From Rhodosorus marinus CCMP1338 (Eukaryota > Plantae > Rhodophyta), in the NCBI GenBank assembly GCA_029953675.1, contig JAMWBK010000004.1:2790001-2854000 (forward strand): a stretch of 64,000 nt of DNA. Direction: 5' to 3'. The translations under genes were made by a program, and so were the position numbers. The notes under the pieces were generated by a model. That model was not told where the DNA came from. It searched no databases and saw only the letters and a list, made by a program, of their open reading frames with translations. Positions 32,877 to 62,691 of the stretch are shown here, piece after piece (positions within the stretch are counted from its first letter, which is position 1; every line of letters begins with the position of its first letter).

Positions 32877-35158
32877 ATGGTTGGTGCGAATACTCTTCAA
32901 GAATTTGCGAGGTATGCTCGTGGTAGAGGTTGTTCTGTGTCGTTGCCTAGGGCTAAAACCCACGGGAAAGGATCTGTGGACAAGCTCAAGACGGGGTTGA
33001 ATGAGCGACCAGGGCCTCGGAAACCAACGCTCCGCTCTCAAGCGGAGTCAGGAACTTCGCGGCTTCTTTTGAGCCAGGAACAAATTTTCGCAAAGTAACT
33101 TTTCCAGCCGTGTTGCTGTAACTCCTTTCAACCGGCGAGCCTGACGTACTCTATTCGCAAACAGACTGACGAAACTGAGCGCAGCTGAGACAGACCGAAA
33201 GCTTCAGGATTCCTGTGCAAGAAATCGCTCGCTTCCGGACGCCGTGCTCGCTGCCATTCTTGCAAAATTCCAAAAGGAGCGCTACGAAAGCGGATTCGGA
33301 GCTCTTTTCGAGAATCTGATGATGGCCAAGCACGTCAGTCCTCGTAGGTTCCAAACTGCGTATAGCATGTTGCAGGTAGAGTGCCTTGGATCGCTGCTGG
33401 CCTACATCTCGCAACCTGTCTAATCCAATTTTCCTTGGTATCTAGAGCTGCACAACTGTTCAGCTGCGAAGCGTCGTAGAGAAGCTAAAGATGATCCAGA
33501 CCAAGAACAAGGTCTTCTTTTTGAGGCTTTCCTTCATCGCAAACTGCCGCCTAGAAGATCACAAGAACGTCGTTCATTGTCTTCACCAGTTCAAGGAGAG
33601 CGGAGTACAGTTAGCCCGGTATGAAGTAAGGCCGTATCTGAAGGCGGTATATAATATTCATGGACTCAAGGCACACAAGGAGAGCTACAAGGAGATGTCT
33701 GATATCTACGATGGACTACCATTGGGAGTGCTCCATGATAAGATTAACCTGATGGCCAGATATGGTTTGGAGAGTGAGGCCAGAGAAGCATTGCTCGTAT
33801 TGAAGCAAAGAGCAGAGTATGACATGTTCTGCGCCGCGTACATAAGGAGCCTCTCTGTACTAGGAAGAATGAGAGAACTTGACAACTTTATGAACGGGAT
33901 ACCAAGGAATGAACAGCTCTTAGCCACTCCTGTGCTAGGAGCCATTCGATTCTCGTATGGGATACAACGCATGCCAAAAAAGCTTGCTGAAATGGAGGGG
34001 AAACTCACCGAATTGAAACATCCTGAAGACCATGTGGCCCGCAGCCGAGAATTCCATTTGGAACCAGCGCGGGTTTGTGGTGGTCGTATCGCTACGAGCG
34101 AGGATATCAAAGACTTGGTTGCTGATCTCAAGTTGACTAAGAGAGCTTATGGAATCTACACACTTCTTAGGGAATCCGGAGCGTTGGCTGACGATCGAAA
34201 AAGAAGCGAGGTATATTACACGTTCGTCGCACGTCGACGATTTTTCGTCCCTGCCAACGAGGTTAACCTTGTTGCGTTCTGCAGGCCGTAAATCTCTTGA
34301 TGAGGTCCTGGACAAACGAAAGCCAACCAGTTTCCGAACGCAGGAACGCGTTCCGTGGGCTGCTTCACCTCAAAGCGTTTAAGTCTTCGCAGCTTTTCGA
34401 GTTAATGCACCGGCAAGACCCGCCCCTGAACATGGAGTGCTACAAGGACATGATTTTTGCTTTCGATAAGCCAAAGGATGCTTCTCGATTCGTCGATGAG
34501 GGCGTGAAGCATAGACTTTTCGGTTGTGCTGTGCCTATGAGAGAAAGGTTAATGAGTCTATACTCGATGAGAGGCTTCCATGAGGAATCAACGCAACAAT
34601 TCCAAGATTGTCGGTCTCAAGGCTTCACTCCGAACTGGAGAATGTATTTTCGTCAGCTTTTGGACTTGTATAGCAATGGAGACCACGACAACGCTCATGA
34701 GCAGCTCCTGCGAATGCACGCAGACGGTGAGCTCTTCAATCTTAAAAAACAATCGGACAATTTGAATTGAACAGGCAGCGCCCACATTCGGGAAAATCAA
34801 CGTCGGTCCTGAAGGTATCTTGCTGTCGGAGAATGAGTACCTTGAGGTCCTTCATATTCTATCCAGGAGTCGCGTAGCTGAGACAGCGACAAGTTTTGTC
34901 GAAGAGCTGCATGCAGCCGGTGTTCCGTTGACCTGTAGAACGTACAACGGTTTGATGCAAATCCTAGCCAGAGAAGCAATGTCACAGGAGACCGTAACTG
35001 TTTTTCAAAAAATGGAGGACCGTGGTGTAGCCAAGGATGTCGTCAGTGGCTACCTGAAGGCGAGGGCGATAGATGCTGTAAGAGATACAATTGTTGATCC
35101 AATTTATCAAAAGGGTCAAGAAGCAGAACGTGTCAGTGATCTGAGAGCCCAAGGATGA
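32877..35158 (+). CDS. Degenerate PPR / helical-repeat protein, intron-containing; 5' end unresolved (possibly ~32250)
   Basis: ORFs 33491-34291, 34297-34770 and 34820-35158 contain PPR-like units, e.g. LTCRTYNGLMQILAREAMSQETVTVFQKMEDRGVAKD and CRSQGFTPNWRMY. Confidence 0.7.
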
Positions 35159-35268
35159 GAAGAGCTAATGGTGTTCGAATGAGATTGTGCTAGAAAGACG
35201 TCTGAAACCTGTCTTGGACGTCTCAGCGAGCAAACAAATCCTGCAGACCAGACATAGCGAGTGATGAA

Positions 35269-36231
35269 TTATCCCAAAATGCGTGCAAATCCTCGCGAGA
35301 ACTCGTGCTTGGCCTCGACTGAGCTCGCCCGCTTCCCAAGGAACATTTCTGCCAAGGCAATAGACAGGGCTTCGCATTTCAATACAAGAGTGCTACGCCC
35401 GGCGAGGTCCACACGGATTTCCGCCCCAGTAAACTCAAAACGCAGCTCTTCGCCAATAGAAAACGTGTGCGTCCGGATGGCCAAGTTCAGCGTTTTCAAG
35501 GCTTGCTTTCCTCCTCTTATTCCCTCCTTCTCAAGTTGGCGCAGTCTCTTTATCATCGCTCGATCAAACGCTTGCTGGATGTGTTTCCCAGGTGCCTGGC
35601 AAGAAAGTTCGGATCAGCCGGACCAGGTAGTGTTTAGTCTTCCTATCGCGAGCATGACCAGCGGGAAGGCCAAGAACTTTGCCGAGCTTCTCACCTCTCG
35701 TGCAACAACCATGACGAGAGTCTTGTCGACTTCGGGTTGACAGACGGCGTTCCAAAAATCTGCGTCATCGTAAACGTCGTCAGCTGATTTGCCCTTCCAG
35801 TCGGAGAACCTCTGCTTCATCGTGTTCTCGCTCATATACAAGCCGATAGCATACATCGGTACCTGCAGACGATTCGAGAAAGGCGCGGGTTCTTAGGTCC
35901 TGAAAGGGGTGATCTCATCGAGGCATCGACAGTCGCTCGGATTGTCCAATAGTCCGTGGTACGGTGGTATGGGCATGTTGGCACGAACCATAAGCAATCG
36001 CCTGAGCCCAGCACCCACGAGCTTGGAGCCCCCATCATCGCCTTCTTCATACTTTATTCCTGGGTATATCTCCACAGCATCACATAGAGCAACTTTCGGG
36101 CCAAACCAGGACCTCCCCACAGCGCCATCGAGACCATAGCCCGTCCTAGGACGAGACCACTGGTATGCTGCATAACTGCTACATACAACTAATGGAAAAA
36201 CCCTCCCAACCTGCTTTACTCTCCACAACAT
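35269..36231 (-). CDS. Chalcone-isomerase-fold protein (CHI-like / FAP / AIM18-AIM46 type), multi-exon
   Basis: SKLVGAGLRRLLM...VPMYAIGLY, and C-terminal FSIGEELRFEF...LKCEALSIALAEMFLGKRASSVEAKHEFSRGF, fit the CHI fold. The basic N-terminus resembles a mitochondrial presequence. Confidence 0.8.
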
Positions 36232-36784
36232 TCTGATTGTTGCCGATCGACTCCCAAGCTACGCGAAGCTTGCTCTTTCCAGCAGGGATCAGCTTCAGAG
36301 TATAATTGGCAAAGGAAGATCCTGAATACCATGAAGACTCTTAACCCACGTTCAGCAACGGGTTTTCTACCGTAAGGAACCTCGTTTTTTCAGACACGCG
36401 TATAATTATAATTCGTTTAGCTTCTCGAAACTTGGATGATAGCCACACTTGTCATTTTTTCATTAGAAGAACAAACTCTTAGTCCAATGAAAAGGGTTAA
36501 TTCGTTGACTGCTTGCCAATCATAGGGCACTATTCACAGAGTAGACGAGCGCTGTTGTTGAACCTGCACTACACTTCTCCAGCAAGTGCAGCGCTGAGGA
36601 GCTCGCTCATCTTCGCATTCCACCTGCGCGCGGTACGGTCAGGATGATGTGCTTGTCGAAAGTTCCAATCGCCAGTTTGTGCGCACCTATGTAGAACACT
36701 CTCTCCTGTTCTAAGATATTGAAAATAACGTCAGGACGAAAGAGTAGGCCGAGTGAACAGTCCTGTCTATGCTTCCTGGTCAGA

Positions 36785-37710
36785 TCATTGGCCACCCGCA
36801 TTTGATTCTATTCTCTGCAATGTTTCAATAAGCAGATTGTCGTCAACGTCATCTTCGTTCTCTTCGTTAGGAATTGAAGCAATCCCGCCCAGGTCCAAAC
36901 GCCGGCCTGTTCCCGAAGGCTGCAGGCGAAGGCTCGCGTTCCGCTCCGCCAGGGACGGGACGTAGCTGGGCAGTACTTCCGCCGTGTCAGGTGTTACAAA
37001 TATCAAACCTCGCTGCACAAGAGGCGCTTTCAGGAGAAGCTTTGTCCCCGGTAATGTACTCACAGCAAGCGCCGGCATGCTCCTTTTTCAAAACGACGAC
37101 GACTAGTTTTTTGAATCGCGAGTCCTCATCTGCCGTTGTTGTTTGGCCGATGAATAACCTACTTGTACTCAATGGCTGTGTATATGTTTCTTCCATCACT
37201 GACAGAAAGGCTCAGCGTCCTTGCAGGGGAGGCCTTAACGTCTTCTCGCGCGTCCGGTGTTCCAATGCTTATCACGTCCATGATCTGGACCAGCTTCGTA
37301 GCAAAATGCCCTCCATTGTCAGGGCCCGTCCTCTTCTAGCCAATAAACCAGCAAAACAGAGAATCGTTTAGAGAAAAAAGGTCACACTAGAAGAGAAACT
37401 TCATGGGGCTGCACTGTGGAATCATTACAACGATGGAGTCCAGGTCAGACTGGAGAACAAAATCCCACGCTCTTTCGGAGGTCGTCATCCGGGCGAGAAC
37501 ATCATCTTTCAAAGGTAAGACTCCTCTAGAGGATAGAACGTCAGCTAGAGATCCCGCCATGCTCCGTTGACTAACATTCTTCCAGATTGCAGCGATGTGC
37601 TCATCCACTCGTGCTTCGTTCCCGAATTCTTCCCAGACCTTTTGATGTGATGGGAACTGTTTCGAACAGTGTGCGCTGGGATCGATGACTTCTCGAAATT
37701 TCGGAATGTG
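36785..37710 (-). CDS. RMI1/TDRD3-family N-terminal OB-fold protein (first exon unresolved)
   Basis: Spliced translation gives FVLQSDLDSIV | ...KLVQIMDVISIG...RTLSLSVSDGRNIYTAIEY | ..MPALAVSTLPGTKLLLKAPLVQRGLIFVTPDTAEVL, which fits the RMI1_N OB pattern. Confidence 0.8.
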
Positions 37711-38736
37711 CTACGCCTATGAAGACGTGAGAAATTCTTCGAAACCAAAGTTCCCTTAAGAAAAGCTGACGATCTTGTCAATGGACTGTTTGCAACCGGG
37801 TGTCCACCCGACTGCAAAGGAACTACTTTGCACGTTGTTCTTGACTCTTAACGGGAGATAATCTACCGAAGCAGATGAACTACATGGCAATGTTTATCTT
37901 GTGGAATGAACGAATAATTGAACAGCAAACAATCCATCTCCAGATATAAAACAACTTTGTTCAGCGGTGCGCCAATGCGTCCATACGCTCCCAGCAACAA
38001 CACTCGACGTGGACAATCGTCTCCATCCAACCGGACGACCACAAACTCAAGCATCAAATTGAGTAGACTTATCCTGTGTTCTGTCTAACAAACACAACTC
38101 AAGATAAGAAAGCACAGAGCCAGGGCAGGCAACCACTTCGAGTAGAAACAATCCTACCTCAGAACCCATCAGCAAAACCGGGAATAAAACATGGTGGTTG
38201 GATTCACCTCGATGCTAAGAGAAACCAGACAAATGTCTCCTAGATGATCAATCATCGCCGTTTAGAACAGCGTCCCACGCCTCCATCATCAAACCCAACC
38301 TACCATCCGTTGAACCTAAATGTCATCTATTCGAAAACACCCACAGATTAACAAAGTTTCTCTAAATAATAGAACGTATTATATATCCAAATTAGGACAA
38401 ACCCCTCCATCAGCCTCTTCTTGGACATTATACTTTCTTAAACTAGATAAAAGCCTCTATATATAGGATAACTAAGTATCTGAGAGCCGGACATCTGTCC
38501 CATCTTTTGGCGATCCAACCTGTGACATATGGGTCTTCAGGAGGAACGTTGCAACATAGGAGTGAGGCGGGTGCTGCGTGCTGGAGGTGATGTCGAAGCG
38601 TTTGTCTGTGTACTGACCAGGAACGTGTAAAGGTAGTTTAACGAAGCTCTGCATCTCTTGCTCTTGAAGTAGTGTCTAGATTCCCGACGGAGTTTTTATA
38701 TTTTGCTTCTTTTTCTTGGGCGGGATTTTGTATAGG

Positions 38737-39545
38737 ATGGGGTTTGTCAGTAATGGAAGTGGGGTTGGACTAAGGTTGAGGGTACCAGGGAGGTGTGGGA
38801 GGTTTGATGGGAGGTTGAGGGTTGGTAGGAGCAACAACAGGAGAAGCACAGTAGTTGCTCTGAACTTTGAAATTCCTCCGCTTCCGTTTACGAGATTTGA
38901 GGCGCTTGTGACTGCCATCGCAGCTGTCGCGGTAGTGCTTGCCGCCAAGCTTTTGCGGATGTTGTTCAGGAGACTATCCGACTATATAGTCGTGGCGGTG
39001 GCGAAGAGAAAACAGAAAACATCAGTTTTGCTTACGGAGAACGTAGACGCGTCGGAGAAGGAGATGGCTGATCTCCTGTTGATCGCGAATGCGACTGAGG
39101 AGATAAAGACCCTTGAAGTGCAGAGAGCAAAGGCCGAGGAGGATTACAAGAGCGGCACTGCTGAGATTGCAAAGGTCAGAGCACGTATCCAGCATTCCAA
39201 GGAACAACTGAAAGGGGTAGGCACCATGAAAGCCGTGAGATCCGCGCTTTGTTCGTCGTGCACAGTTTCTAATTTTCAAAGCTCCGTTTGGGCTCTGTAT
39301 TATCCGGTCTACTTCAGGACGGAGCTGCCTGGCTTGTAAGCGAAGAAAATCTCGAGGAGGAAAGGGACAAATGGCTTGCAATAGTACATGAGATGGAGGC
39401 GGAAAGGGAAGAAACTGCTCAAAAGCTTAGCAGCGCAAATCAGGAGGAAGCGGAACTCAGTGGGCTGGTCTCACGGTACCGTGAACGGCGAGATCAACTT
39501 TCTTCACTGTTCTCGAATCGACAGCCCCAACCCGATAACCAATGA
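38737..39545 (+). CDS. Putative plastid-targeted single-TM coiled-coil protein (2 exons)
   Basis: Starts MGFVSNGSGVGLRLRV (transit-like), then the hydrophobic ALVTAIAAVAVVLAAKLL, then E/K-rich heptads. The intron GTAGGC...TTCAG joins to DGAAWLVSEENLEEERDKW. Confidence 0.75.
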
Positions 39546-42200: not shown

Positions 42201-43932
42201 ATGGAGTCTGGGTTTGTTATTGCTGGATTTGTTCTGAAAGGATCAACGAAGTTGAAGAGCTGTGGATTTGACAGGGATCGAAGGCGTTTTAGAGTTTTCA
42301 AGGAGCAGAAGAGGACAGCGGTAAGCCTGGTCCCGCGTTGTACCTTTGTTTTGTTGTTCATTCAGCTGTCTGGGTGGATACTTTGACCGTTTCTTCTATC
42401 TGTTTTGCTGACTGATATTCTTCCTTAATGGGTTTGTAGACGGTTACTAGCCTGGTATGTTTTTCTCCGTTGACGGCGTTTGTAGCTCCCAGGCGGTTGA
42501 TCACATTTGTTTCCGTGTTGGTAACAATCGTTGCAACGATCTTTGGCCTCGTTGCACGGAGGATGAGGAAAAAGTTGAACAGGGATGCGAACTTGTTGAT
42601 ATCTGAATCTTCTCAGTCCGATGATGGGCGAAGAGCTTTGGCGGCCACCATCCAATTGAAAAACAAGATCAGCGATGAGATCCTCGAGGACAAAAACATG
42701 CTCAACAAAGTGCTGTTGGAAACACAAGACAAGGCCAAGAGCGCAGATCTCAAAGTCCAAGTGCTTAAAGAAGACCTTCAGTTGAAGCAGAAAGAACTCG
42801 ACAGCGTACGTTATGAAACCACACCATGCCTACCCTTCTGCTATTCGTACAATGTGCACTTGCAGAGGATCCAACGCATAACCACTTTCCCCGAGGGTTA
42901 CGAGCTACGAGAAGAAACCAAGCGATCAATTCCTCCAAAGCTGAGGAAGAATGTGCAACCAGGCTTTTCGGGAAACTGGAGATTCACCACACTGCAAAGC
43001 CTTATGGAGAGAGTGTTCAGTACATGTTTGCTGAAGACAAGGAGAAGTGGAAAATCATCGTTACCAGGAGAAACAGAGTTTCTGCTCTTCGTACCGGATC
43101 TAATGCTTTGCATGAAGTAGACCCTGAAGATGAGTTCAAGCGGGACTATACTCTGTTTCTGCGCTTTCGGCGGATATAAGGAGACATGTTTACATTCCTC
43201 ATGTCGTTGAAGAGTTTTGTGCGTTGACACTGAGCTGAACGGAATAGAACATAGTTAGTTCCGATCGGGATCGGACGGGATTGGAAGCGGGAGAAAGCTG
43301 GTTATGCGTGGATTGTGGCGGAAGTGCACTTTGCATCGATATTAGAGACCATGGACTTCCAGAGTTGGCCTTCAGCAAAGGGATCTGAAATTTCTTTTGC
43401 TTTGGTTGTCTTTTAGGCTAAAATTTTGTTACACAAATTGGATCAGGATGGAAGAACTCTGGAGCATGAGTTGAGGATGCAACAGATTAATAAGACGAGA
43501 CTCATACAGTGGCTTGAAGAAAAGCTGGTAGAAAATGCCAGAGTACTGGAAAGCCTCGGCGAAGAGTTGGTAGAGGCGAGGCTCGTACAGACGGAAGCAT
43601 CCGATGTCCTCATGAGTGTGAAGTACGAGGTTGATCAGCTTGAGGATATAGTCACTGAACGCGAGAACCGATTGAGGAGACTCAAACAAGGAGACAGCGA
43701 AGTTCACCCTGAAATGGGAGATTTGCGAGTCCTGCGCAAAGAAGAGAATCAGATACTGCAAGAAGTGCAGGATCTCACGAACAGATATCCGCAGTTGGAG
43801 GTATGCCAAACGACTCTTTTTCTCGACCACGGCAGAAAAGGACAAACCCACTGAAGTGTAGGCATTTTCTTTCGAATTGTGCTTTTTCTGCAGGAAACGT
43901 TCTCGAAGGAATGGAAGAAATTGGGTTCCTAA
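42201..43932 (+). CDS. Putative plastid-targeted single-TM coiled-coil protein (introns 42321-42439, probably 42806-43416, and 43801-43893)
   Basis: MESGFVIAGFVLKGS transit-like start, TM LITFVSVLVTIVATIFGLVA and long heptad-rich segments. All proposed junctions are phase 0. The gene ends ETFSKEWKKLGS* (TAA 43930-43932). Confidence 0.65.
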
Positions 43933-43990: not shown

Positions 43991-44280
43991 CAGCCATCGA
44001 ACTAGCCATCGAACTAGCCATCGAACTAGCCGTCGAACTAGCCATCGAACTAGCCGTCGAACTAGCCATCGAACTAGCCGTCGAACCAGCCATCGAACTA
44101 GCCATCGAACCAGCCATCGAACCAGCCATCGAACCGGCCATCGAACCGGCCATCGAACCGGCCATCGAACTAGCCATCGAACTAGCCATCGAACTAGCCA
44201 TCGAACTAACCATCGAACCAGCCATCGAACTAGCCGTCGAACCAGCCGTCGAACCAGCCGTTGAACCAGCCGTCGAACCA
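43991..44280. repeat. Minisatellite, ~24 x 12-bp unit YAGCCRTCGAAC
   Basis: Directly visible, with no spacers between units. Variants are mostly transitions. Confidence 0.97.
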
Positions 44281-49470: not shown

Positions 49471-51450
49471 CTAGCTGGATACCGGTACGATGCGATCCTT
49501 CTCGATTGCTGAAATTGCCGTAGCAATGATGAAGGAATAAGCGTCGTTGATGTCGGTGGTTGTTGATATGGCTCTGTCTTCACGAATGTCTCCCGTGTTG
49601 ATGATGTCTCTTTTCCGGAGGATCTTCGCGGCCTCGACAAGCGCGGGCCGAAACAGATCCGGATTGGATTTAGTTGCCGCAGTCAGTGAGCTGATGATGC
49701 CCTTACTGGGCCATTCACCCGTCGCCTGCATGTGCTGCAGCGTCTCTATGACTAAATCAGGGTCTTGCTTTGAAATGAACGATTGGAAGAAGTGGTAGTA
49801 GGTCGCAGCACCAATCTTGAGCCCGCTTCTCTCCATTTCCAATACAATCTTCTTCGCCTTCACGAGCTTTCCCTGCTCGCACGAAACTCGGACTAGGGTT
49901 GAGAATAGCCATCCAGTCGGTCGGGTTCCGCGCTCCCGCAGCTTTGTCAGGATCTGAAATATTTCCGACTCCATTCCCGCCTTAATCAGTGCATACAAGG
50001 CACTGGCGTACGTTCGAGTCGAAATTCGCACCCGATCTGACTTCATCGATTCCAGGACTTCCATTACACGATTGATGTCCCCTCGCTCACTGTACGCGCT
50101 GAGAAGCTCCCTGAACGACGCACCACCCAACTTGAAGCCTTCCGCCTTCCAGCTGCTGATCGTCTCCTCGGCGAGTTCAATGTTTCCTTCAGAACAGAAC
50201 ATACGAATGATCGAAGCATACGACTCATCGTGCAATGGAATCCCTTTGCTCACCAGCTCGCGGAGGTTTGTCAGTGCCTCCTCCCTGTGCCCCCTGTTCG
50301 CATATATCTGAACTGCCTCCCATGTGCAATCGCGATTGGGCACCACTCCTAACCGTGACATGCGCTCGAATACAACTTTGACGTTGTCCAGCTCGTCGTA
50401 CTCATCGTAAAGACGAAGCATCACTCGTAGAGTATCTGAATTTGGCTCAATATCTGCTGCCAACATGTCCTCTAGTTTCTCCTCAGCTGCCGCAATCCCA
50501 AACGCTTTTCCGTGGCCCTCGATGAAGTGGTTGTAGGTCAGAGCAGTTGGGATAGCAAAACGGAATCGATGAATCATGTAAAACAGGTGGTCCAACGCTT
50601 TCGCATCGCCGAGCCTTGCGTATTCCCCGCTCAGTAAAGAGAAAGGTTCCTCGCTTGGCTTCTTCCCTCGCTTCTTCATTGTCTTAATGAGTTCCAATGC
50701 CTTCTTGTATCTACCCAACTTTGTGTAGGCCTCAACTAGCGCCAAGTAGATTTCGTAGGTTGGTTTGATCTTACGCTGCCTTAATGTCGAGTACGTTTCA
50801 ACCACTTGATCTGGCTTGTTGACGTAGTTCTGCAATCTCATGATCTTATAAAACAGATGAATGTCTGGCTCCACGTGACACTCGTTGATTTCTCGGTAAA
50901 TCGTCTCAGCGGTGGAGTAGTCTTGTACGCTGAAGTACGCTTCGAGAAGAAGCCGAAAAATGACGGTGTTTGGCATGATCTCCAGCTCCTTCATTCGTGC
51001 ATACATTTTCTCCATATTGTCAATATCCGCACTCTCAGAATACTTGGATAGCATCTGAGAGCAAGTTACAAAATCTGGGGGTACGTCGGAGTCGATCATG
51101 TCCTCAAACAGAATCTCAGCTTCTCGCATAGCGTATTTTCTCCCGAGCGCCGCAATAAGCTTGTTGAATGTGTAAGTTGTAGGAAGAAGCTGGTTGGCTC
51201 TCATCTCCGAATACCTCTCCATGGCAAGCTCTATCTTCCCACCATCAATCAGCTCAAGAATAAGTGCGACCTCCTTATCCACGCTGACAATCTCAAGGTC
51301 TAGGTTCTTCTTTTTCCTTGAGACCAAGTCCTCCGCCATGCTGAACTTCCTAGTGGCCATCATGGCGACTTCTCCCTTCACACGGGAGCATCGTCCTCCT
51401 AGCCCACCGTTCCCAACCGGTACGGTCAAACCCAAAACGAAACCCATCAT
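49471..51450 (-). CDS. P-class PPR protein, intronless, ~15 motifs, plastid-transit-like N-terminus
   Basis: Starts MMGFVLGLTVPVGNGG. Motifs include TYTFNKLIAALGRKYAMREAEILFEDMIDSDVPPD. Confidence 0.95.
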   Translation of the reverse strand: MMGFVLGLTVPVGNGGLGGRCSRVKGEVAMMATRKFSMAEDLVSRKKKNLDLEIVSVDKEVALILELIDGGKIELAMERYSEMRANQLLPTTYTFNKLIAALGRKYAMREAEILFEDMIDSDVPPDFVTCSQMLSKYSESADIDNMEKMYARMKELEIMPNTVIFRLLLEAYFSVQDYSTAETIYREINECHVEPDIHLFYKIMRLQNYVNKPDQVVETYSTLRQRKIKPTYEIYLALVEAYTKLGRYKKALELIKTMKKRGKKPSEEPFSLLSGEYARLGDAKALDHLFYMIHRFRFAIPTALTYNHFIEGHGKAFGIAAAEEKLEDMLAADIEPNSDTLRVMLRLYDEYDELDNVKVVFERMSRLGVVPNRDCTWEAVQIYANRGHREEALTNLRELVSKGIPLHDESYASIIRMFCSEGNIELAEETISSWKAEGFKLGGASFRELLSAYSERGDINRVMEVLESMKSDRVRISTRTYASALYALIKAGMESEIFQILTKLRERGTRPTGWLFSTLVRVSCEQGKLVKAKKIVLEMERSGLKIGAATYYHFFQSFISKQDPDLVIETLQHMQATGEWPSKGIISSLTAATKSNPDLFRPALVEAAKILRKRDIINTGDIREDRAISTTTDINDAYSFIIATAISAIEKDRIVPVSS

Positions 51451-53338
51451 AGCGAATCCTAGAAAAAAAAACCGTCACTTGTACGCAACCCTCACCGCTG
51501 CTCAACTACAGTACAAAAACATCCTTCTCATCCTAACAGACACCCCGCCACATTCCTACCCTAGCAACCCCGTTTCCGCAGATTTCCGGCAACCCACTCC
51601 GTGCTCACTGCTTCCTCATAAAGCCCTCTGCAATAATATCAAAAGCACAGTAGACTCGGAAATGGTCAGCATTCCAACGTCTGTCGTCCCCGAAACCCAT
51701 TCCCAACCAACCACACAACTTCCGCTTCCACACACACACGCATACCCCTCCGTCCAATCTAGAAACCAACAAAAAAAATTGTCTTTCCTCAGACACATCG
51801 GCAACAGACTCTACGACCTTTGTTTCTACCCACACCCGTTTCACTATTCAAGATGAGCACGGGGCAGCGTCGCTTCAAAGCCCTGCGCGTTTGCAACGCT
51901 GAAGGATACAAACCATAGTCGCCTTCACCGAAAAACGCTAGAACAAGGAGACGTCATGCCGCGGCGCACGTTCCCAAAGATTTTATTGAGAATTACGCGC
52001 TTCTTCTCATCGATGGGTTGCCTTGCGAACGCCGCTTCCTAAGTTCACCGATGAAGTCGGATTTTTTTGAAGGTGGAAGAAAGTGTAGTCCAACGGGCAT
52101 CTCGTGCCTTCGGGGTTTTCTCTGAAAGTACTCTGACTAAGGACAGGGCCTCCCTCCAGGAAACAAGCCGGTACGTGAAGAGCCTCTTGACTTAATGCGA
52201 GTATGTACTCGTGGCGTTGTTCGATTGCAGTTTTGGGGGTGGAGAACTGGTGGTCCGGCATGTTGCTTACGACTCTAAGCAGGTGTTCTTCTGAATATGC
52301 TCTCGTTCAGTACACGATCTCTCTGTCAGGCAGTCGTCTGAGCCCCTTGTGGCAGCTTCCACTTTTGCGTCGGGCTTCGGACTAGAGGAATGTCATGTAG
52401 CAACATCTTGTCATGCTGCTGCAATCAGGCATTGTGACATTGGAAAAAAAAGTGCATAAGACAACAGCTGAATCGCATATTTTATTGACAAATTCTCAGC
52501 TAGCTGCCTCGAGGCAGCGCATGGTAAGTTGAAGATATTCATAAATAATAGTACAGCTCGATTTACAGAAACGGCATTCTGTTCAGGCTATACAAACTCT
52601 GCGAGCTATGCAAGAGGCTCAGCTCAGTCGCACTCTTCCTAGGCATTTTTCTGTTCTCGGTAGGATATCCTTCCGCTTGCAAAAGCAGAATGTTCGCCTC
52701 CTTTTCCTCCATCTTCAACGCGCTCACTGGATCCCTCGGCATCATAACGGGACTACTTGTAGTAGAATATCCCTCCATCGAGTCTTTCAAAACAATTTCT
52801 TCGAATAAAACCCTTCACCAATCTTATCTGTTTACCCAATACCTTGTCACAGCGTTCCTCCACTCTACCTTCGCTTCAAAAAGCACAGCCCATCTTTATA
52901 CGCACATCCACAGGACAAATCCAGCGAGAAAACCAACAGACCGTAATCGAGCACAGAGAAATCTTCAATGAAATTCACTGATTCAGATTGATAAGAAGGG
53001 GTGAACACCAAACCGATGAAGACACTGCCAAAGTACTATGTGCTACAGCACATAATTGTATCAGCCCTTCCCACCATATCCCATTTCTCAATGTACAAGC
53101 CAAAATCACTTTCCATTCCCCTCCCCCCCCCACCCACCGCGGGGGGATTAGATTACGAACATCCAAAAAAGGAAAAATGCGGTGTCAGGCATTCAGCATT
53201 CAGCAGCTCTGTCCTGTTTAAAAGTTTACATAATACAAAATAAATGTGTTGGTCGCCGTCACCGTGATCGTCCGCAAACGGCCCGTTCGAAACAATCTGC
53301 AGCTGAGTCTCTCAAAAAACTTCTCAAAAACTTATATT

Positions 53339-53453
53339 TAGTTCGAGCCCATTGGAACTCTATGAAAATCAAGGGTTTGGAAAACAGCTAATATAGTTCG
53401 AGCCCATTGGAACTCTGTTAAAATCAAGGGTTTGGAAAACAGCTAAAATAGTT
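53339..53453. repeat. 55-bp direct tandem duplication
   Basis: TAGTTCGAGCCCATTGGAACTCT(AT/GT)(G/T)AAAATCAAGGGTTTGGAAAACAGCTAA occurs at 53339 and 53394. Confidence 0.95.
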
Positions 53454-54269
53454 ATCAATTCGCCTTTTTAGCCGTTTTCGTAAACTAATGAAAATATGTT
53501 AATTCTTGGTAGGGAAAAACGCTCAGGTTGGAGGCCAGCTTTGGATCGTAGCCCTTTTCATGTCATGAAAGGAGAAAGGGGGTAGAGATATGGTTTTACG
53601 CATTCCGGATCCTTAAATTATTTACTGGAAATGGTTTTTATCGTTGTCTGTTTGGAATGGTCACCGGGGTTGAGTGAGAGGATGGATGGTTGATGGTTTT
53701 CCGGATGAGCGTTCGGGATTGATGTTTCGGGCTCTGGTCATGGAAAGGGAAGGAAAGCCACTAAGAGGGACAAGGATCAGACGTTTGGAAATCGTGTACC
53801 CCATTTGTCAAGTTGTCCACTGGTTTTGACCTTTTTTGGGCAGTTTTGAAACATGCATTTTGCGTTTTTCACGCTTTTTCAATACTTTTTATGCTCTACT
53901 TTTGTTTTGGGGTGGATCGCATCAAGGTGGGGAGGGCGGCTAAGGGGGGATGGACCTCTGTGTCATCTTGGAAGCGCTTTTGATGTTTGCTGGTTCGAAG
54001 TTTGTATCCAGGGGGTGTGAGGACTAAACGAAACCATTCGTGAAGCCTATGTAGAGCTCGGTAAATCAAGCCGAGATATCTTATATTGCGGGGCACGTTA
54101 GGTCCTTAAAATTCGTAGGTCGGGCTCAGTTTAGTAAGGATCGCCCCATCTCAGGGCCGTGCGCGTCCGATTAATTTGATGTGGAGCTTTCCAGACGTCC
54201 CATCCCGCCAAACCCCTTCCGCTCGAAGTGTTGAGGCTCTGCAATCAAATCCGAAGTCGCCTGCACGTA

Positions 54270-54310
54270 TCGCAAGTGTAGCCTCAACGTCGTTTAGGCT
54301 ACACTTGCGA
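54270..54310. other. Perfect 15-bp inverted repeat (hairpin, 11-nt loop)
   Basis: TCGCAAGTGTAGCCT-caacgtcgttt-AGGCTACACTTGCGA. Confidence 0.9.
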
Positions 54311-57217
54311 GAGCTCTGGCTTTCGCAGTAACAGAAGAACCCATAGACGAAATGCTTATGATTGAAACTCAGTCTTCTGACATGTACAGCAAATTCGCTT
54401 GGATGGTCTGTAAATAGAGTTTCGTGCTTCCCAAGTGCACTCGCGGAAACGATAGCTTTTTTAGAGTTCTTTTTCAGAGGGATTCGATTTTTGTTGTTGA
54501 TACCGTTCGATGCTGGCCCAGTTAGTTTCTATTATTGGAAAAGGTTGATTGGGCCATGGGGTTCTTTTTTAGTCGAGCTCGCGTTGAATCTATTCGATGC
54601 GGCGCAAGGAGCATTCTATAGTAGATGCTCTTCTCCTAATCACTCAATTGTGTACCTAGGTTGTGGCACATCGGGATACATTGTGTACAGATGCGATGGC
54701 AAAGCTGGTTCTTGTGATTGTTCAAGGACTGGGACAGCCTGCATTGCGTCGAAAGGAGAACCCTGACTGGGTACAACTAGCGACGGTGCGCTTGGGCATT
54801 GAATAGAGTTGTGGAGTACGACTTGGTTTGTCTCCCTGGGAGATCATAGACTTGGGGGAGACTTGTACGATAGTTACCAAAAACGTTTGTTTTCAGCGCT
54901 ATCGCTATCACCTTTTAAGAATCAATGCTCCAGCTTGCACGCTGTCTTCGAAGAGGGTCCAGAGGGGCTCTCCAGTTCCTCCCTCAGTTCATGAGACAGA
55001 ACCGCGAAGATTCTGTAGAAAGTTTCAGCCATCAAGAAAGAAAGGGAACTGGATTTGTGTGAAGTTGATACGGGCGGCACCAACCGCAAACTCGTTATCT
55101 AAGTCCTACGCCATTACGGAATTGAGAAAATTATATCTTCATGATGTAGCCCACCTGAACAACTACTTTCAAATTGCAAGCACCGGTATACTTTTCTCGG
55201 ACGAGTTGGACATGGACCATCAGCGACGGCCTTGCTCTACAACAGCAAGGGGCCTGCTTTGGGTTCTTGTTGGACGTGAGTTCTTCCACAACCACATACT
55301 AGAAAACCAGGCTTGAATTGGGTCTGCCGCGTGCCCAAGCGTCGGAAGCACCATCGAATGACTTTCTTTCCCCTTGCCCGAAAGTTCTCAATGACATGAG
55401 CTCCTAAGTACCTTGCGCAGAGTGAGAATACGCACTGAACGTCAAACTCATGAAGCAGCACAACGTTGACTGCATTTCTTGTGCACTTAGCCGCAAAAAA
55501 AAACCATAGCTCGTGTTTCCGTTCGCAAACGCGATTGTATCTATGGGCTGCACGTGTCCGTTCGGGACTTGGAACATTCCATGGCCGAGTTCCCAGCTGA
55601 GTACTTCACCTCCAACATATGCGGACGTACCTCTTTACATTCTTATCACATCAACGATCCTAAAAACTACCGGACAAGAGCCAAGAACTTGTTGAATCCT
55701 AGGAATCCAACGAAGTGTCTATGATAAAATCGACCAAAACCTAAGCTGGGCAGCAACAATCTCATTGTAGTCTCAAGAGCTGCGACTATCATGTAATCTG
55801 CTGAGAGGCATGGCATCTGTCGAGAGCTAATTCTTGGTGCTTCGTGACACCCGCCTGTGTGGATCCAGAGATGAACATCCGCGGAAATCTACATGTAACA
55901 AGGCTGACTCAGATACCACCTACAACAAGCAAATGGGACGCCAATCCATGACGGTACACAACAGAGAGAGACAGAGGAAGATTTTATCCATCTTCTGAAT
56001 TCTCCTTACGTTCTTCTCCTCCAATCCTTCTGAAGCAATCGCCTTGGTCTGAGGACGACGTCCACGTTTCCGTAGTCAGTTCCAAAGCTGCAAAGAAACG
56101 GCTTCCTGACCAGAAAACAAACAAAAGAGGAGTTCGATTTGACCCTGTGGCGCTCAAATGCTGCTTTATCTGTAGACGCGCATCATCAGCTTCTTGTCTC
56201 TCGCTTCAAAGGTAGTTAGGCTCGGAATAAACGGATCATCAGTTGGATCAACGGATTCCACTTAGCACAGTGATCTCACCCGGTCCATGAACATAGAAAA
56301 GTCCAATCGTATCCAATAATTAAAAGAAAATCAAAACATATCCCTAACTTGGATTCGAGTTTCAAGGGGGGGCAGCGGCCGGTACATTGCGAACCTCTTA
56401 AGAAACTCACGAAAAAGTATGATGAAAAAAACAAAACCTACTGGGACAGCTGTCGCATCAGATATCGAGAAGGGACCTCGAGGGGGCTCAGTGTGCTTAT
56501 TGTCACCCAAGATTTCCAACAACGACCAAAAAAAATCGAAAAAGTCTTATTTTATTGATTGAATTTCTGACTTTTATAATTGAGTGTTGAGCACAGTGGT
56601 CCTTAATCGACTGTTTCCTAGTCCCCAACGAATAGAAATAGATTGAGAATGTAAAATAGAAATTATATCAATGATGACGATTAAATATATATTAATATGT
56701 GGTTGTCCTCGTAGTGGTTGTTTGAGTCTCGTGGAGATGGTTCGATTGCAGTACGCTCTTAGCTCCTCGTTCTTCCCATGAAGATTTTAAAGGGACATTG
56801 GTTGGGACGGAGGTTGAGTTGGTTATGTTGGGCTGAGTTACAGTAACTCGGCAGGGGAGGTGAAGAGTTAGATTTGGAGAGGGGGTGGGATAGAAGTTTC
56901 GCCTTGATATATCTGAATGCCGTGAGGAAGGTCTTTAGTAAGGAGTTAGGGGGCCTTGCTTTGTGCTGGAAAGGGGAGCTTGGAACGGGTTTTATGTTCT
57001 GGTTGGAGTTGTGTTGATCTTTTTTTTTTGTTTTGAAGAGTCATGTGCGTTTGCTGTTAGCACGTTTGACGATGTTAGCTTTGGATGAATGGACTAGGGA
57101 GTTTATATAGATACTTTTGTTCATTGTCTGGAGGCGAGTAGTTCATCTTTTGGTCTTGGTCCGTAATAAACGCGGTTTTCAGGTGAGAGAGGCAGAGAAC
57201 AAGCTTGACTCTCAATC

Positions 57218-59893
57218 ATGGTTGGGTTTGTCTCTGGATTTAGTGTTTCGAGAGGACGTCGAGGACGTTCTAATATCGGCGCGGTTTCTCCCGGTTCGGC
57301 AAGACAAAGTACCAGGTGCGTGATTAGAGTAACGCCCGGAAGGAGCGATGATACTACTCCCAAGCCTTTGCTGTCAAGTTACTATCGGAATATGGGTTCG
57401 GGCCGAGGGCCAAAGGGTGGGAGTTCAAAGCCGGTTAGGGAAACTATTGGAGAGATTTTGAAGCTTTTGAAGAATGGAGATGGAAATGCTGCGCAGGAAT
57501 TATTCGAGAAACTGAGACAAACTGCAGACGGCCTGTCACACAAAGATTCAACTCTGCTCATGATAAAGTTTGGCCAACATGGTTATCTGCGAACGGCGGA
57601 GCGAGTCTTCGACTACGTGACGAGAACAAGGGGAATGGCGGACGTTGTTTTGTATACGTCGCTGATGAAGCTCTATTCGAAGAAGGGTGACCTGAACTCG
57701 GTCGTTATGTGCTTCTCCAAGCTGATTAGTGATGGCTTGGAACCGGATGTAATCGCGTACAATACGCTAATTGACGCTTACAGTAAATACGGCACAATTG
57801 ATAATGCAACGGAGGCGTTGGAGGATATGAAAAGTTCAGGACTGCAGCCGGACGTATGGACCTATTCGACGTTGATCAAACTGTACTCAAGGAAGCGCAG
57901 GCTCGACATGGTCAGAAGCTGCTTTGAGGAAATGAATGAAATCGGGGTGCAGCCCAACGTGACTACGTACAATACTTTAATCCACGCGTTTGCCTCCCTC
58001 GATGACTTGGATTCAGCTGAAACGGCATTTGACCAATTGAGAGCTGATGGACTGCATCCAAATGTTTGGACCTACTCTTCTCTTATGAAGGTTCATCTAC
58101 TGAAGAGGGACGTCCATAGTGTTCGGCGATGTTTTAATGAGATGCTAGAGGAAAACGTCCTCCCTAACACGATTACCTACAACACCATGATTGACGCGTT
58201 GGGGAAAGCTGGACTGGCTACGGAGATGCAAGAGTGTTTTGAAAGAATGCAAAAAACAGGTGTTCGACAGGATGTATGGACCTACACCACAATGCTCAAG
58301 GCATACTCCACCACGGACTGCGTGGAAAAAATGGAAAACGTCCTCGCGCTTATGCGCGCTCGTGGCGTGCGGCCGAATCTGGTAACATGGAACACGATTC
58401 TATCGACGTACAGCAGTCTTGGGAATATGACCGGCATCAGGGAAGCCCTCGCGGAAATGAGGAAAGGGGGTTTCGAGGCGGACTTCATTACCTACACGAC
58501 GCTCGCAAAACTATTTCAGGATAAGGAAGAGCCAGAGGCGTCCTTGGCCGCGTATGATATGATGCGCGAGCACGGACTGAAGATTGGTACAAAGGTGTAC
58601 AATATTCTAATCGAGAAAGCTGGCAAGTCCGATCGCTGGGAAAGTACAGGTGAATTATATCGAGTGATGCTAAGCGACGGAGTTAAGCCGAATTTGCAGA
58701 CGTTCAACATTATTATGAAAATGCACGCAAAACGGAACGACCTGGAAGAAGTAAGGAGAACTTTTTGGAGCATTCGACGCAATCACTTAAAACCTGACAT
58801 TGTAAGCTACAACACCCTTATCGACGCCATCGGGAAGGAGGAAGGCGCTGAGGCAGCTGAGCAAGTGTTTAGTGAGCTTCCGAAACTTGGGACAAAGCCA
58901 GATGCGTGGACTCTGACCACAATGATGAACTTGTACGCCGAGGAGGTGAACCTGGAGATGGCTCATCGGTATTTTCAGCTGATGACTGAGTACGGCTTTG
59001 AACATACGGTGGTAACCTTCAGTATTCTTATTGAGGCTCTCATTAGATCTGGCGATAGTATGTCACCGGAGGCTGCATTTCGGTCTATGCAGGCCCGCGG
59101 TATCGTACCGGATGCGATCTGCTTTAATACTATGATCAACATGTACGTGAAGAAAGGTGACGTAGGCTCTGCACTTGAAATCAAGGCACAGATGCAGTCT
59201 GAGGGTTTAGAAGCAACGACGGTTACCTACAGTTCCTTATTTTATGGGCTTGAGAAAGCGGATCGCATGGAAGAGGCAGATCAGCTGCTCCAGGAGATGG
59301 AGTCGAAGCGCCTGGAACCAAACATGTGGATGTTTTGTTTGCTGATTGACTCAATGTTGAGGCGGAACAGGCGTAGGAGCGCGTTGGGACTCCTCGGCAG
59401 AATGAGGAGAGGCTCCGAAAAGCCGAACCTCGACTTGTACAATACGGTGATACACTACCATGCCAGAAAGGGTAGAATTACAGATGCTCGGCTAGTTCTC
59501 CAGGAGATGATGCACCACTCGTTGCAGCCAAACGGAGATACTTTCACCCCGCTAATTTGTGCTTGTGTCCGTGGCAACAATCCGAAGGCTCTTCTCGTCA
59601 TCTTGGAGAATTTGCGGCAATCCGGACTGAAGCCTGATAGAAGCACTATCTCGTTTGTGCAGAGAGAGGCGAGAAAGATGAACAGCTCTTTCCATACACC
59701 GCTTCTCGTACTGGAGGAGCTCGCGAGAGATGTAGCTGAAAGGGATAAGAACAATTCAGAGAAGAAATTGGAAGATGAAAGTACGGCAGGGACAAACCAG
59801 GCGGAGAGTCGGGGAAACACAGATCCAGCGTCTGTGCCGGAGACCGGTTCCATAAGCGAACTTTATGATTTCCTTATTTGGAGCTTGGCATGA
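57218..59893 (+). CDS. P-class PPR protein, intronless, ~19-20 tandem canonical motifs, plastid-transit-like N-terminus
   Basis: Starts MVGFVSGFSVSRGRRG. There are 19 contiguous 35-aa motifs from aa 143 to 807, e.g. VIAYNTLIDAYSKYGTIDNATEALEDMKSSGLQPD. Confidence 0.97.
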   Translation: MVGFVSGFSVSRGRRGRSNIGAVSPGSARQSTRCVIRVTPGRSDDTTPKPLLSSYYRNMGSGRGPKGGSSKPVRETIGEILKLLKNGDGNAAQELFEKLRQTADGLSHKDSTLLMIKFGQHGYLRTAERVFDYVTRTRGMADVVLYTSLMKLYSKKGDLNSVVMCFSKLISDGLEPDVIAYNTLIDAYSKYGTIDNATEALEDMKSSGLQPDVWTYSTLIKLYSRKRRLDMVRSCFEEMNEIGVQPNVTTYNTLIHAFASLDDLDSAETAFDQLRADGLHPNVWTYSSLMKVHLLKRDVHSVRRCFNEMLEENVLPNTITYNTMIDALGKAGLATEMQECFERMQKTGVRQDVWTYTTMLKAYSTTDCVEKMENVLALMRARGVRPNLVTWNTILSTYSSLGNMTGIREALAEMRKGGFEADFITYTTLAKLFQDKEEPEASLAAYDMMREHGLKIGTKVYNILIEKAGKSDRWESTGELYRVMLSDGVKPNLQTFNIIMKMHAKRNDLEEVRRTFWSIRRNHLKPDIVSYNTLIDAIGKEEGAEAAEQVFSELPKLGTKPDAWTLTTMMNLYAEEVNLEMAHRYFQLMTEYGFEHTVVTFSILIEALIRSGDSMSPEAAFRSMQARGIVPDAICFNTMINMYVKKGDVGSALEIKAQMQSEGLEATTVTYSSLFYGLEKADRMEEADQLLQEMESKRLEPNMWMFCLLIDSMLRRNRRRSALGLLGRMRRGSEKPNLDLYNTVIHYHARKGRITDARLVLQEMMHHSLQPNGDTFTPLICACVRGNNPKALLVILENLRQSGLKPDRSTISFVQREARKMNSSFHTPLLVLEELARDVAERDKNNSEKKLEDESTAGTNQAESRGNTDPASVPETGSISELYDFLIWSLA

Positions 59894-60753
59894 AGAATCT
59901 TTAGGATTCTCTAACAGTTGATTGACAGATTACAGACAGAATTCAGGTTATTAACAGTTCTTAGGACGATTGTAAAGCAAATTTACTGAAACCGCAGATC
60001 TGTACTTTTGAATTTAGCCTGTCTACGAGTGTGAATGAGCGCTCCCAAAGCAAGAAGTGCTCACGCATTGCCGCTCATGAAGGGCACCCCATGGATTTTC
60101 GATGAACTCCCAACAGTCTCTCCTTTTTTGCATCGGGCTTGGTGAACCTTCTTTCGTCCAGTGACCCGCACCGGCGCGGCAAAATTTGCGCCTGCACAAA
60201 TGATCACGGATACAATTCCTCAGGTAGTTTACACTCATGCAACCAAAAAAGCAGCGCAGCAGTACCATCACCAACATGAGCAACCTACCCTGGGTCCCGC
60301 TTAACCCTAGATCCAATGCCTACTGCCCAACTGAATCAAGAAGACTAAAACCCTCTCCTCTGGATCCCCTCAATATGACAGCCTGTCACATCTTTTTTCA
60401 ACAAATTTACAACAATTCTTCCTCGGCCGTCACGAATGTGATATTTCGAGGTTTCCCAATTTTTCACAAACTTCTTCCATCTAAACTAAAAACACCACGA
60501 GGGCCAGGAATTACGGAATATCGGCCCCGTTGAAGTTTTGTATGTGGAAATGTCTTGTAAATGAGTTTTTGCGGATGGCGATGTGGGATGGATGGGAAAG
60601 GGAGGGATGGGGATGGGGTTTGGATGCTTCTATGTGAGGAGAGCTTAGGGGGCTTGTTTGAAGAGGATTTTCGTAAATGAAAGGGATCCAAATACGAAGA
60701 ATATGAGGACATATATATTCTTTTAAAAGGAGCTTGGGAAGAGCTTTTCGATC

Positions 60754-62691
60754 ATGGACGATGGTACCTGTTTTGCGAATTACAATGTCAACTTTGCAAG
60801 TGGAAGAGGCGTTGCGATTAGGAAGCATGGTCGATTATTACCGTGCGTGATGTTGTTGAATGGAAGGCCAAAGTCGAAGAGACCCAAGCTGAGGAAAGGC
60901 TATAAGCCGCCGCGGCTGACGAGGCAGTTGAAATGGGCGCTTGAGGATCTGGAGGATTTGGTTGTCAGGAAGAAGCTTACCTACGCCTACCAAAAGTTTG
61001 TGGATATCACCAAGCTTGATATTGTCCCCGAGATGAAGCAGTATCATGAGATGATTCTTCTTATGGGGTTGATCAGCGTCGAAGACGCAGAACAAGTGAT
61101 TGAAGATATGAGGCGCAAGGAGGTGCCAATAGGAACCTCGGCTCTGAATGAGCTCATAAAGGTCCACGGCCGCCAACGTGATTCTGAAGGAATAAGGATG
61201 ACTTTGGAGAGGATTGATGATATGGGACTCGCTGCTGATGGGGATACGATATGGGCCATGGTAGAAGGCTTCGTACGAGCTGGTGACGTTGAGGGAGGGC
61301 GTTTTGCCATAGAGGAAATGAAACGCAGGAAGCTAATGAATCAGAGAGGAAGTTTTCTTGCAAGAATGCGGTTTTATTCGTTCATCGGGGATGTTGATAA
61401 TGTCGAGGAGGCGTTTTTCGAGATGACGGAGAAGTACGGTCATTTTCCGATCTGTTATGCGTACAATCTGAGAATTGCCACGTTTGCAGAGAAGCGGGAG
61501 GTAGTCGCCGCACTTGAAACTATTGAGGAAATGAAACTTGCTAAACTGAAACCAAACGAAATGACGTACAGCGTGGTTATCAAAATGTACGTGGCCATGG
61601 GAAAAGTAGCGGCTGCGAAGGAGCTGTTCAGCAAGATGAGGAAGGAAGGAATACAACCCAAAGAGAATACGTTTGCGAGTATCACAAGGGGGGTTCGCTA
61701 CGAGCAACGCCGCGTTGAGATTGTGGACGCGCTGCGCGAAATGAACCGAAATCTCGACCGGCCTGTGGGATTTCTGAACAGCTTTTCGTCCCTTGTCAAC
61801 CTGTTCACTGCGCGGAAGTCAGAAGTGATCTCTTCGCAGATAGCATTGAAGAGCATGCTTCAGTTCGATGTTGATCCGGAACACGCGGTCTATTTGTCAG
61901 TGTTTTCACCTGCTGCCTCAGACGGGAAGCTGTGCAATCCCGCACTCGCCTGTGAACGGATGGCGGCAAGCGGGATACGTCTTGACCCTATGTTCTACAC
62001 TGGCCTGTTCGACGCGTACCATCGTCTCGGAGAGCCACAGTACGCTTTGGCGACCTTGGAGATGATGGAGGAAAATGGTAATGATATCACCGCTGGAATG
62101 ATATCGGTTGTAGTTGGGTCTTACTGTCGTAGAGGGAAATGCTCAATTGCGCTGAAGTGGCTCAGTCTGCTTTTGCAGAACACGATTCTTCCAAGCTCCA
62201 AGGCTTTTGCGTATATTGCCAACGGCTACTTTTCTGTGCTGGATGAGAAGAGCTCTGCGACTGCCGTATCCTTAATGGCAAAGTATTCAATTCCCTGGCA
62301 CCCGAGACAACGTAGAGCTCTGTATCGAGCTAGACAGAGGGATGACAGCTTCCTCAGCGGCTGGGACGTGCCATTCGTGAATGCTGGGGATGATATTAAG
62401 GAGGATACGCTTTGCGGAAGCGATTTTACACAAACGTTTATGGTCCAAGACGTGAGAGCACAATCAGACGGCAGCTCGCTAGATGAGGCGCAGAGAGAAG
62501 CTCTGAGTGAGCTGGAAACCGCAGAGGACATTGATATGAGTCAGAACCTGATTCTTTCCAAACTTACTGATATGGTGCTTCAGGCCAAAGACTCAATGGC
62601 AAGCGGCGGTCGCAACAGGTTGTTCCCGAGACCGGTTTCGAATTCGGACATTCTCGAGACCATTCGTGAGTTTGAAGAGCTCAGTGCATAG
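60754..62691 (+). CDS. P-class PPR protein, intronless, ~10 motifs plus an acidic C-terminal tail
   Basis: Motifs include EMTYSVVIKMYVAMGKVAAAKELFSKMRKEGIQPK and CYAYNLRIATFAEKREVVAALETIEEMKLAKLKPN. Confidence 0.93.
   Translation: MDDGTCFANYNVNFASGRGVAIRKHGRLLPCVMLLNGRPKSKRPKLRKGYKPPRLTRQLKWALEDLEDLVVRKKLTYAYQKFVDITKLDIVPEMKQYHEMILLMGLISVEDAEQVIEDMRRKEVPIGTSALNELIKVHGRQRDSEGIRMTLERIDDMGLAADGDTIWAMVEGFVRAGDVEGGRFAIEEMKRRKLMNQRGSFLARMRFYSFIGDVDNVEEAFFEMTEKYGHFPICYAYNLRIATFAEKREVVAALETIEEMKLAKLKPNEMTYSVVIKMYVAMGKVAAAKELFSKMRKEGIQPKENTFASITRGVRYEQRRVEIVDALREMNRNLDRPVGFLNSFSSLVNLFTARKSEVISSQIALKSMLQFDVDPEHAVYLSVFSPAASDGKLCNPALACERMAASGIRLDPMFYTGLFDAYHRLGEPQYALATLEMMEENGNDITAGMISVVVGSYCRRGKCSIALKWLSLLLQNTILPSSKAFAYIANGYFSVLDEKSSATAVSLMAKYSIPWHPRQRRALYRARQRDDSFLSGWDVPFVNAGDDIKEDTLCGSDFTQTFMVQDVRAQSDGSSLDEAQREALSELETAEDIDMSQNLILSKLTDMVLQAKDSMASGGRNRLFPRPVSNSDILETIREFEELSA

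Follow-up and report, generated by a model that had tools for sequence, protein, structure and literature searches.

A 64,000-nucleotide window of nuclear contig JAMWBK010000004.1 (3.19 Mb; assembly GCA_029953675.1) of the red alga Rhodosorus marinus CCMP1338 carries five complete genes for pentatricopeptide repeat (PPR) proteins, here called PPR_A to PPR_E, between position 32877 (the ATG of PPR_A) and position 62691 (the stop codon of PPR_E); all positions count from the first letter of the window, also beyond its end. PPR_B to PPR_E make up four of five consecutive genes in the annotated order, and all five PPR genes fall within twelve. The clustering of B to E is probably not due to chance, and the history that we favour, with about an even chance of being the correct one, is that a founder without introns was duplicated locally long ago and that its copies then diverged. 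A preliminary description drawn from the letters alone had placed five PPR genes in this interval of a probable red-algal genome, and the source and the number of genes both agree with it: four of the proteins exceed the Pfam thresholds, and PPR_A is recognised by its matches to solved PPR structures. Four of the genes had been described as complete, but all five are. GenBank already lists them as hypothetical or PPR-domain proteins, and the 891-aa open reading frame (ORF) of PPR_D is identical to an annotated product on the contig. The five genes and the spacer between the two innermost ones are:

32877-35158, plus strand: PPR_A (NDN08_002650), 659 aa, five exons, degenerate PPR
46504-47997, minus strand: PPR_B, 497 aa, single exon, P-class
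49471-51450, minus strand: PPR_C, 659 aa, single exon, P-class
51451-57217: C-D spacer, 5.8 kb between the divergently oriented PPR_C and PPR_D
57218-59893, plus strand: PPR_D, 891 aa, single exon, canonical P-class
60754-62691, plus strand: PPR_E, 645 aa, single exon, P-class

PPR_B to PPR_E are canonical P-class PPR proteins. Among the Pfam PPR models of the clan (PF01535, PF13041, PF12854, PF13812 and PF17177), PPR_2 (cut-off 30 bits) matches all four above the gathering threshold (B, 76 bits; C, 164 bits; D, 403 bits; E, 77.5 bits), and PPR_B scores 71 bits with PPR_3 as well. Motif maps give about 10 motifs for PPR_B (several of them degenerate), about 11 or more for PPR_C, about 19 for PPR_D and about 8 recognisable ones for PPR_E, which ends in an acidic C-terminal tail. 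The PPR_2 match of PPR_D is spread over 14 stretches with a regular period, the 32-residue matches and 3-residue gaps adding up to a spacing of 35 aa. The Pfam matches of the five proteins include neither a DYW nor an E domain, and hence all five are assigned to the P class. In phmmer searches against the PDB, PPR_D matched designer PPRs (E = 2e-84) and PPR10 (E = 3e-74), and PPR_B matched designer PPRs and PAP2/pTAC2.

The residue pairs that are canonical at positions 5 and 35 (ND, NN, NS, TD, TN, SN and SD) occur in PPR_D and in some motifs of PPR_B and PPR_C. In PPR_D the code pairs TD, ND, SN, NN and TN recur at the 35-aa spacing, and the target predicted from these motif residues reads 5'-GUAYAUAY...YUUnGYAnY-3'. 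Its closest database relatives are generic, with at most 27-30% identity. The sequence cluster of PPR_D itself, although this is the most canonical of the five proteins, was missing from its homology-search results and had no precomputed Pfam matches, which probably reflects a gap in the index and not biology. The top database relative is a giant canonical PPR protein of 1430 aa (P0002; 27% identity), encoded at 10001-14293 of a locus from contig Ga0484968_0000011 of JGI metagenome 3300045961. This contig is 166 kb long and prokaryote-like, and the neighbours of P0002 include DUF87, DUF2958, a sigma-54 activator, E2-CBASS, ThiF and a phage-integrase gene; the locus looks like a bacterial mobile element with a eukaryote-type PPR gene.

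The R. marinus proteins resemble the land-plant P-class proteins maize PPR10 (4M57/4M59/4OE1) and PAP2/pTAC2 (8R5O, 8W9Z) in their tandem 35-residue helix-turn-helix motifs with canonical residues 5 and 35, in an N-terminal presequence and in having no catalytic C-terminal domain (phmmer E from 1e-18 to 3e-74). They differ from both in an identity of 20-27%, with no detectable orthology, and in a red-algal host with a plastid signal based on phenylalanine (F). All are ordinary members of a well-known family, and it is their tight clustering without mutual similarity that is mildly unusual.

PPR_A is the degenerate member. It appears in the window as three ORF fragments, and its annotated product was found by homology search; an exact rebuild gives exons at 32877-33094, 33165-33375, 33446-34210, 34285-34726 and 34815-35158, separated by four GT-AG introns of 70, 70, 74 and 88 nt. 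The protein stays under every Pfam PPR cut-off (at best 25.9 against 27 bits for PPR_long; 22.1 against 25 bits for PPR), and one motif alone is strong with a local hidden Markov model (HMM). Residues ~485-625, corresponding to about four repeats, match designer PPRs (E = 2e-23) and maize PPR10 (E = 1e-18) in phmmer searches of the PDB, and a single-sequence AlphaFold model has paired helices throughout, at low confidence (pLDDT 50). A homologue search among 5.8e9 proteins returned only PPR_A itself. On these matches we take PPR_A to be a degenerate but real PPR protein. Lying 11 kb from PPR_B, it would be an unrelated, intron-bearing PPR gene outside the group formed by B to E.

The annotated order of the region is PPR_A, a chalcone-isomerase-like gene, an RMI1_N gene, genes for proteins of 235, 266, 120 and 115 aa, PPR_B, PPR_C, a 71-aa gene, PPR_D, PPR_E and a leucine-rich repeat (LRR) gene. 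The four clustered PPR genes are laid out as B<-C<-, the 5.8-kb spacer, ->D->E, with B-C and D-E forming co-oriented pairs. A search of the six-frame ORFs over positions 1-69893 with an HMM of the PPR motifs found in the window gave no PPR besides the five, and the C-D spacer contained no PPR relic by motif HMM, no Rfam match at E<=0.1 and no protein-like ORFs.

All four genes from B to E are single-exon, while introns are present in nine of the 11 other annotated genes of the neighbourhood (Fisher p=0.011), the two intronless non-PPR neighbours being the hypothetical genes of 71 and 115 aa. The nuclear genome as a whole has 31.19 Mb, 8,392 genes and 24,821 introns, on average about three introns per gene. 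Four intronless genes amid intron-bearing neighbours therefore suggest an old local duplication of an intronless founder, although as a sign of one founder the shared intronlessness is suggestive and not decisive.

Any such duplication would be old. Pairwise identity among the five proteins is 20-29% (BLASTP), no DNA repeats linking the five genes were found, and since this identity is as low as that to land-plant PPRs, a recent tandem array is excluded on sequence grounds, in agreement with the preliminary description, which had noticed no obvious close similarity and no recent array. Of the features expected of a tandem array, adjacency and pairwise co-orientation (B-C and D-E) are present, and B to E have their intronlessness in common, whereas the sequences show no demonstrable common descent. 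The best-scoring pair of the five is C-D (166 bits), and PPR_D is the top match of PPR_C after its own orthologue; the 50 residues at either end of these two proteins are also weakly similar (p=0.014 at the N-terminus and 0.02 at the C-terminus, uncorrected). An inverted duplication of a gene pair, with C corresponding to D and B to E, was considered and rejected: the C-D pair scores highest of all, but B-E scores lowest (37.7 bits).

Transcripts from other strains and taxa give an idea of how quickly these proteins change. The orthologue of PPR_C (P0122), from an R. marinus MMETSP transcriptome, is 92% identical and starts with MGFVVGL. PPR_E has orthologues in two MMETSP transcriptomes, one with 88% identity (P0126) and the other with 47% (P0127/P0267), the latter starting with MFVSSASPG. 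PPR_C and PPR_E are thus transcribed, as seen from orthologue transcripts in other strains, which together with the selection on PPR_E described below speaks for functional genes. Relatives of PPR_E were found as transcripts only, and those of PPR_C were limited to the same-species transcript. Metagenome and transcriptome scans gave no relatives of PPR_B or PPR_D, and no orthologue of PPR_D was detectable in a search that was swamped by land-plant PPRs. Against its 88% orthologue, PPR_E has a ratio of nonsynonymous to synonymous substitutions (dN/dS) of 0.24 at a dS of 0.25, ranging from 0.17 to 0.31 by region, which points to purifying selection acting on a protein that evolves fairly fast. 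Orthologue identity falls from 92% and 88% between strains (dS 0.25) to 47% in the next taxon. At this rate of divergence paralogy would be quickly erased, so that a lost paralogy among B to E is plausible.

Two further observations concern PPR_E. The 88% transcript contig (positions 1-4132, from another Rhodosorus strain) is colinear with window positions 60632-64713 over PPR_E and the convergent antisense LRR gene, and a 96-nt intron of the LRR gene is spliced out in it; this indicates that the PPR_E and LRR transcripts overlap at their 3' ends and that the adjacency of the two genes is conserved. Moreover, the basic segment VMLLNGRPKSKRPKLRKGYKPPRLTRQLKWALEDLE (window 60850-60960, PPR_E residues ~33-68), just after the presequence, is identical in P0267, and no other part of PPR_E is nearly as conserved in comparison with this 47% orthologue.

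We suggest the following history. PPR_B, PPR_C, PPR_D and PPR_E would descend from an intronless founder through old local duplications, one inversion possibly having given the divergent layout of the two co-oriented pairs. The four proteins would since have diverged to the ~20-25% identity that is typical of any two PPR proteins, and the cluster would be a historical footprint and not a functional unit. Two kinds of known gene cluster invite comparison. The RFL clusters of flowering plants consist of intron-poor P-class PPR genes lying side by side through local duplication, and the RFL paralogues are recent, highly similar, under diversifying selection and mitochondrial. In contrast, the five R. 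marinus proteins share 20-29% identity, rank each other no higher than land-plant PPRs and have no DNA-level repeats; selection on PPR_E, the only gene tested, is purifying (dN/dS 0.24), and two or more of the proteins appear to be targeted to the plastid. The NCL cluster of OPR genes in Chlamydomonas, reportedly described by Boulouis et al. in 2015, likewise arose by local duplication and comprises nuclear genes for helical-repeat, organelle-targeted RNA-binding proteins. Unlike the NCL genes, whose paralogues are recent and clearly related, the R. marinus genes belong to the PPR and not the OPR family. On RFL clusters see also PMC8321540.

The grouping was compared with random placement, as the preliminary description had proposed. 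N PPR genes were placed at random among the 8,392 genes, and the event counted was four PPRs in five consecutive genes anywhere in the genome. Its probability is below 0.001 for N up to 120 and rises to 0.01 at N=200, 0.05 at N=300 and 0.22 at N=450; a simulation of five PPRs in thirteen genes gave similar probabilities. The cluster is therefore beyond chance unless the genome holds about 300 or more PPR genes, and the verdict hangs on N.

A chance grouping within a large lineage-specific family of several hundred PPR genes would account for the locus, and we regard it as unlikely but not negligible. The simulated probability reaches 0.2-0.65 at N=450 and exceeds 0.5 at N=600, and large families are known outside land plants from organisms whose organelle genomes are minicircular (Symbiodinium minutum, ~620 PPR genes; Karenia brevis, ~100). 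The host, a stylonematophycean red alga, has minicircular mitochondrial DNA as well. Many windows were scanned, so that rare coincidences are preferentially picked up. However, the remaining ~40 kb around the cluster (window 1-32876 and 62692-69893) hold no other PPR ORF, and algal counts in the literature are small (14 in Chlamydomonas). A family of 300-600 genes would represent 4-7% of the 8,392 genes and exceed the proportion in Arabidopsis (~450 PPR genes), and PPRs are nowhere mentioned in the R. marinus genome paper or its supplements.

Several points weigh against the old duplication of an intronless founder, or limit its support. Common descent is without positive sequence evidence among the five proteins: pooled with 124 mostly land-plant PPRs, they rank each other no higher than the plant proteins, and the terminal similarity of C and D fails correction for 20 comparisons. 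Land-plant PPR genes are generally intron-poor, and the intronlessness of B to E may be a trait of the family and not a mark of the cluster. The nominal significance of the clustering is overstated, because many windows in many genomes were scanned (the look-elsewhere effect), and it depends on the PPR count of R. marinus; literature searches for counts in Rhodosorus or other red algae returned nothing usable. Finally, the organelle targeting discussed below was judged by eye from the N-termini.

A broader scenario combines local duplication with a large family, and we consider it decidedly unlikely. In R. marinus, and perhaps in all Stylonematophyceae, intronless P-class PPRs would have multiplied independently by local duplication, in a so far unreported expansion tied to a minicircular and fast-evolving mitochondrial DNA as in dinoflagellates, and the present locus would be a birth site whose paralogy has been erased within the class. 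R. marinus is like Symbiodinium minutum and Trypanosoma brucei (28 PPR genes) in combining a minicircular organelle genome with PPR genes. In R. marinus, unlike in Symbiodinium minutum, a PPR expansion is hypothetical, and the clearest N-termini suggest import into the plastid, whereas it is the mitochondrion whose genome is minicircular. PPR proteins serve as the main link through which the nucleus controls gene expression in organelles, and little work has been done on them in red algae. If the expansion were true, it would be a second independent case of an odd organelle genome accompanied by PPR proliferation, and it would provide candidate factors for the processing of plastid or minicircle RNA, the best of them being PPR_D with its ~19 canonical motifs and readable code. 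If the locus is a relic of old duplication, as is more likely, it is a routine point of annotation.

Whatever their origin, the proteins would each be imported into an organelle, which to judge from their N-termini would be the plastid for PPR_C and PPR_D, probably the plastid for PPR_E and probably the mitochondrion for PPR_A. Red-algal plastid precursors are marked by a phenylalanine at the very N-terminus, a signal that was lost in green plants (PMC7038456). The N-termini of PPR_C (MMGFVLGL; MGFV in its orthologue) and PPR_D (MVGFVSGF) fit this motif, with F at position 3-4 and no early acidic residue, and appear clearly plastid-type. PPR_E starts with MDDGTCF, while its 47% orthologue (MFVSS) has F at position 2, and PPR_B has F at position 8; both N-termini are ambiguous. 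For PPR_A an Arg-rich helix is predicted and F stands at position 10, so that its N-terminus looks more mitochondrial. The organelle-transit-like N-termini of the preliminary description are thus recovered as plastid-type in C and D but are ambiguous in the other three, and one organelle common to all five is not evident. By analogy with the family, each protein would recognise a single organellar RNA or a small number of them in single-stranded form, each repeat contacting one nucleotide by means of its residues 5 and 35, and such binding would protect transcript ends or aid splicing or translation.

The N-termini also bear on whether the locus could be a functional neighbourhood, in which the PPR genes and the genes at 38737 and 42201 are kept together by co-regulation or by a shared plastid RNA pathway; we give this little credence. 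A plastid-type MxGFV N-terminus occurs in at least C, D and the proteins of these two genes, the 47% orthologue of PPR_E begins with MFVSS, and C and D diverge around one long spacer. The preliminary description had listed the genes at 38737 and 42201 as encoding transit peptides, and their F-based starts (MGFV and MESGFV) bear this out. On the other hand, in a weak test the 400-nt regions upstream of the five genes had no more 7- to 10-mers in common than shuffled sequences, A and B are separated by unrelated genes (chalcone-isomerase-like, RMI1_N and small hypotheticals), and the N-termini are mixed, that of A being mitochondrial-looking and those of B and E ambiguous. PPR proteins normally act independently and on different RNAs, and to our knowledge functional gene clusters are no established feature of red-algal nuclear genomes; both speak against a functional neighbourhood. 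A co-regulated plastid module is therefore not supported. Of the two explanations first offered for the locus, a chance cluster in a dense expansion and a co-located plastid module, neither is supported as stated, since the former needs about 300 PPR genes and the latter meets mixed N-termini and no shared k-mers.

Independent retroposition, with B to E as unrelated processed copies inserted separately into a permissive region, would fit four intronless genes in intron-rich surroundings without special mutual similarity, but we give it as little credence as the functional neighbourhood: neither poly(A) remnants nor target-site duplications nor flanking repeats were found, four independent insertions in 16 kb would need an unexplained hotspot, and all four genes encode a complete N-terminal presequence and are expressed or selected, unlike dead copies.

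The remaining features of the neighbourhood, in order of position, are:

35269-36231, minus strand: chalcone-isomerase-like gene, annotated, between PPR_A and PPR_B
36785-37560, minus strand: RMI1_N gene, annotated, between PPR_A and PPR_B
38737-39545, plus strand: 235-aa gene with one 101-nt intron, annotated and gene model rebuilt
42201-43120, plus strand: 266-aa gene with one 119-nt intron, annotated and gene model rebuilt
43477-43932: 120-aa hypothetical gene, annotated, coiled coil, next after the 266-aa gene
Between the 120-aa gene and PPR_B: 115-aa hypothetical gene, annotated, intronless
52563-52778, minus strand: 71-aa hypothetical gene, sole annotated gene of the C-D spacer, intronless
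53339-53453: 55-bp repeat in two copies, in the C-D spacer
63311-65026, minus strand: LRR gene, next after PPR_E and convergent with it

The proteins encoded at 38737 and 42201 have similar architectures, the former with an MGFV start, one transmembrane helix and a coiled coil, the latter with an MESGFV start, a transmembrane helix and a coiled coil. Neither belongs to a Pfam family and neither is a PPR. Paralogy of the two was considered and rejected, as they have no significant similarity despite their like architecture. The 266-aa gene reads from its coiled coil into sequence that is not protein-like, and the next gene (43477-43932) again encodes a coiled coil; the 266-aa and 120-aa models (42201-43932) may represent a single gene that was wrongly split. 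The interval from the 120-aa to the 115-aa gene contains about 24 copies of the 12-bp unit AGCCATCGAACT (43992-44278; 92% match), which give rise to spurious long ORFs in both orientations (RLVRWLV... and HRTSHRTS...).

Several other features lie upstream of PPR_A. A tRNA-Thr(CGU) gene (24296-24368, minus strand) adjoins the gene for the clathrin heavy chain (24929-31090, minus strand; 1774 aa). A 39-bp unit is repeated 8.6 times at 10950-11317, inside a 365-aa ORF (10439-11536) that matches no Pfam family, and a 173-bp tandem repeat of 2.2 copies is located at 8191-8574.

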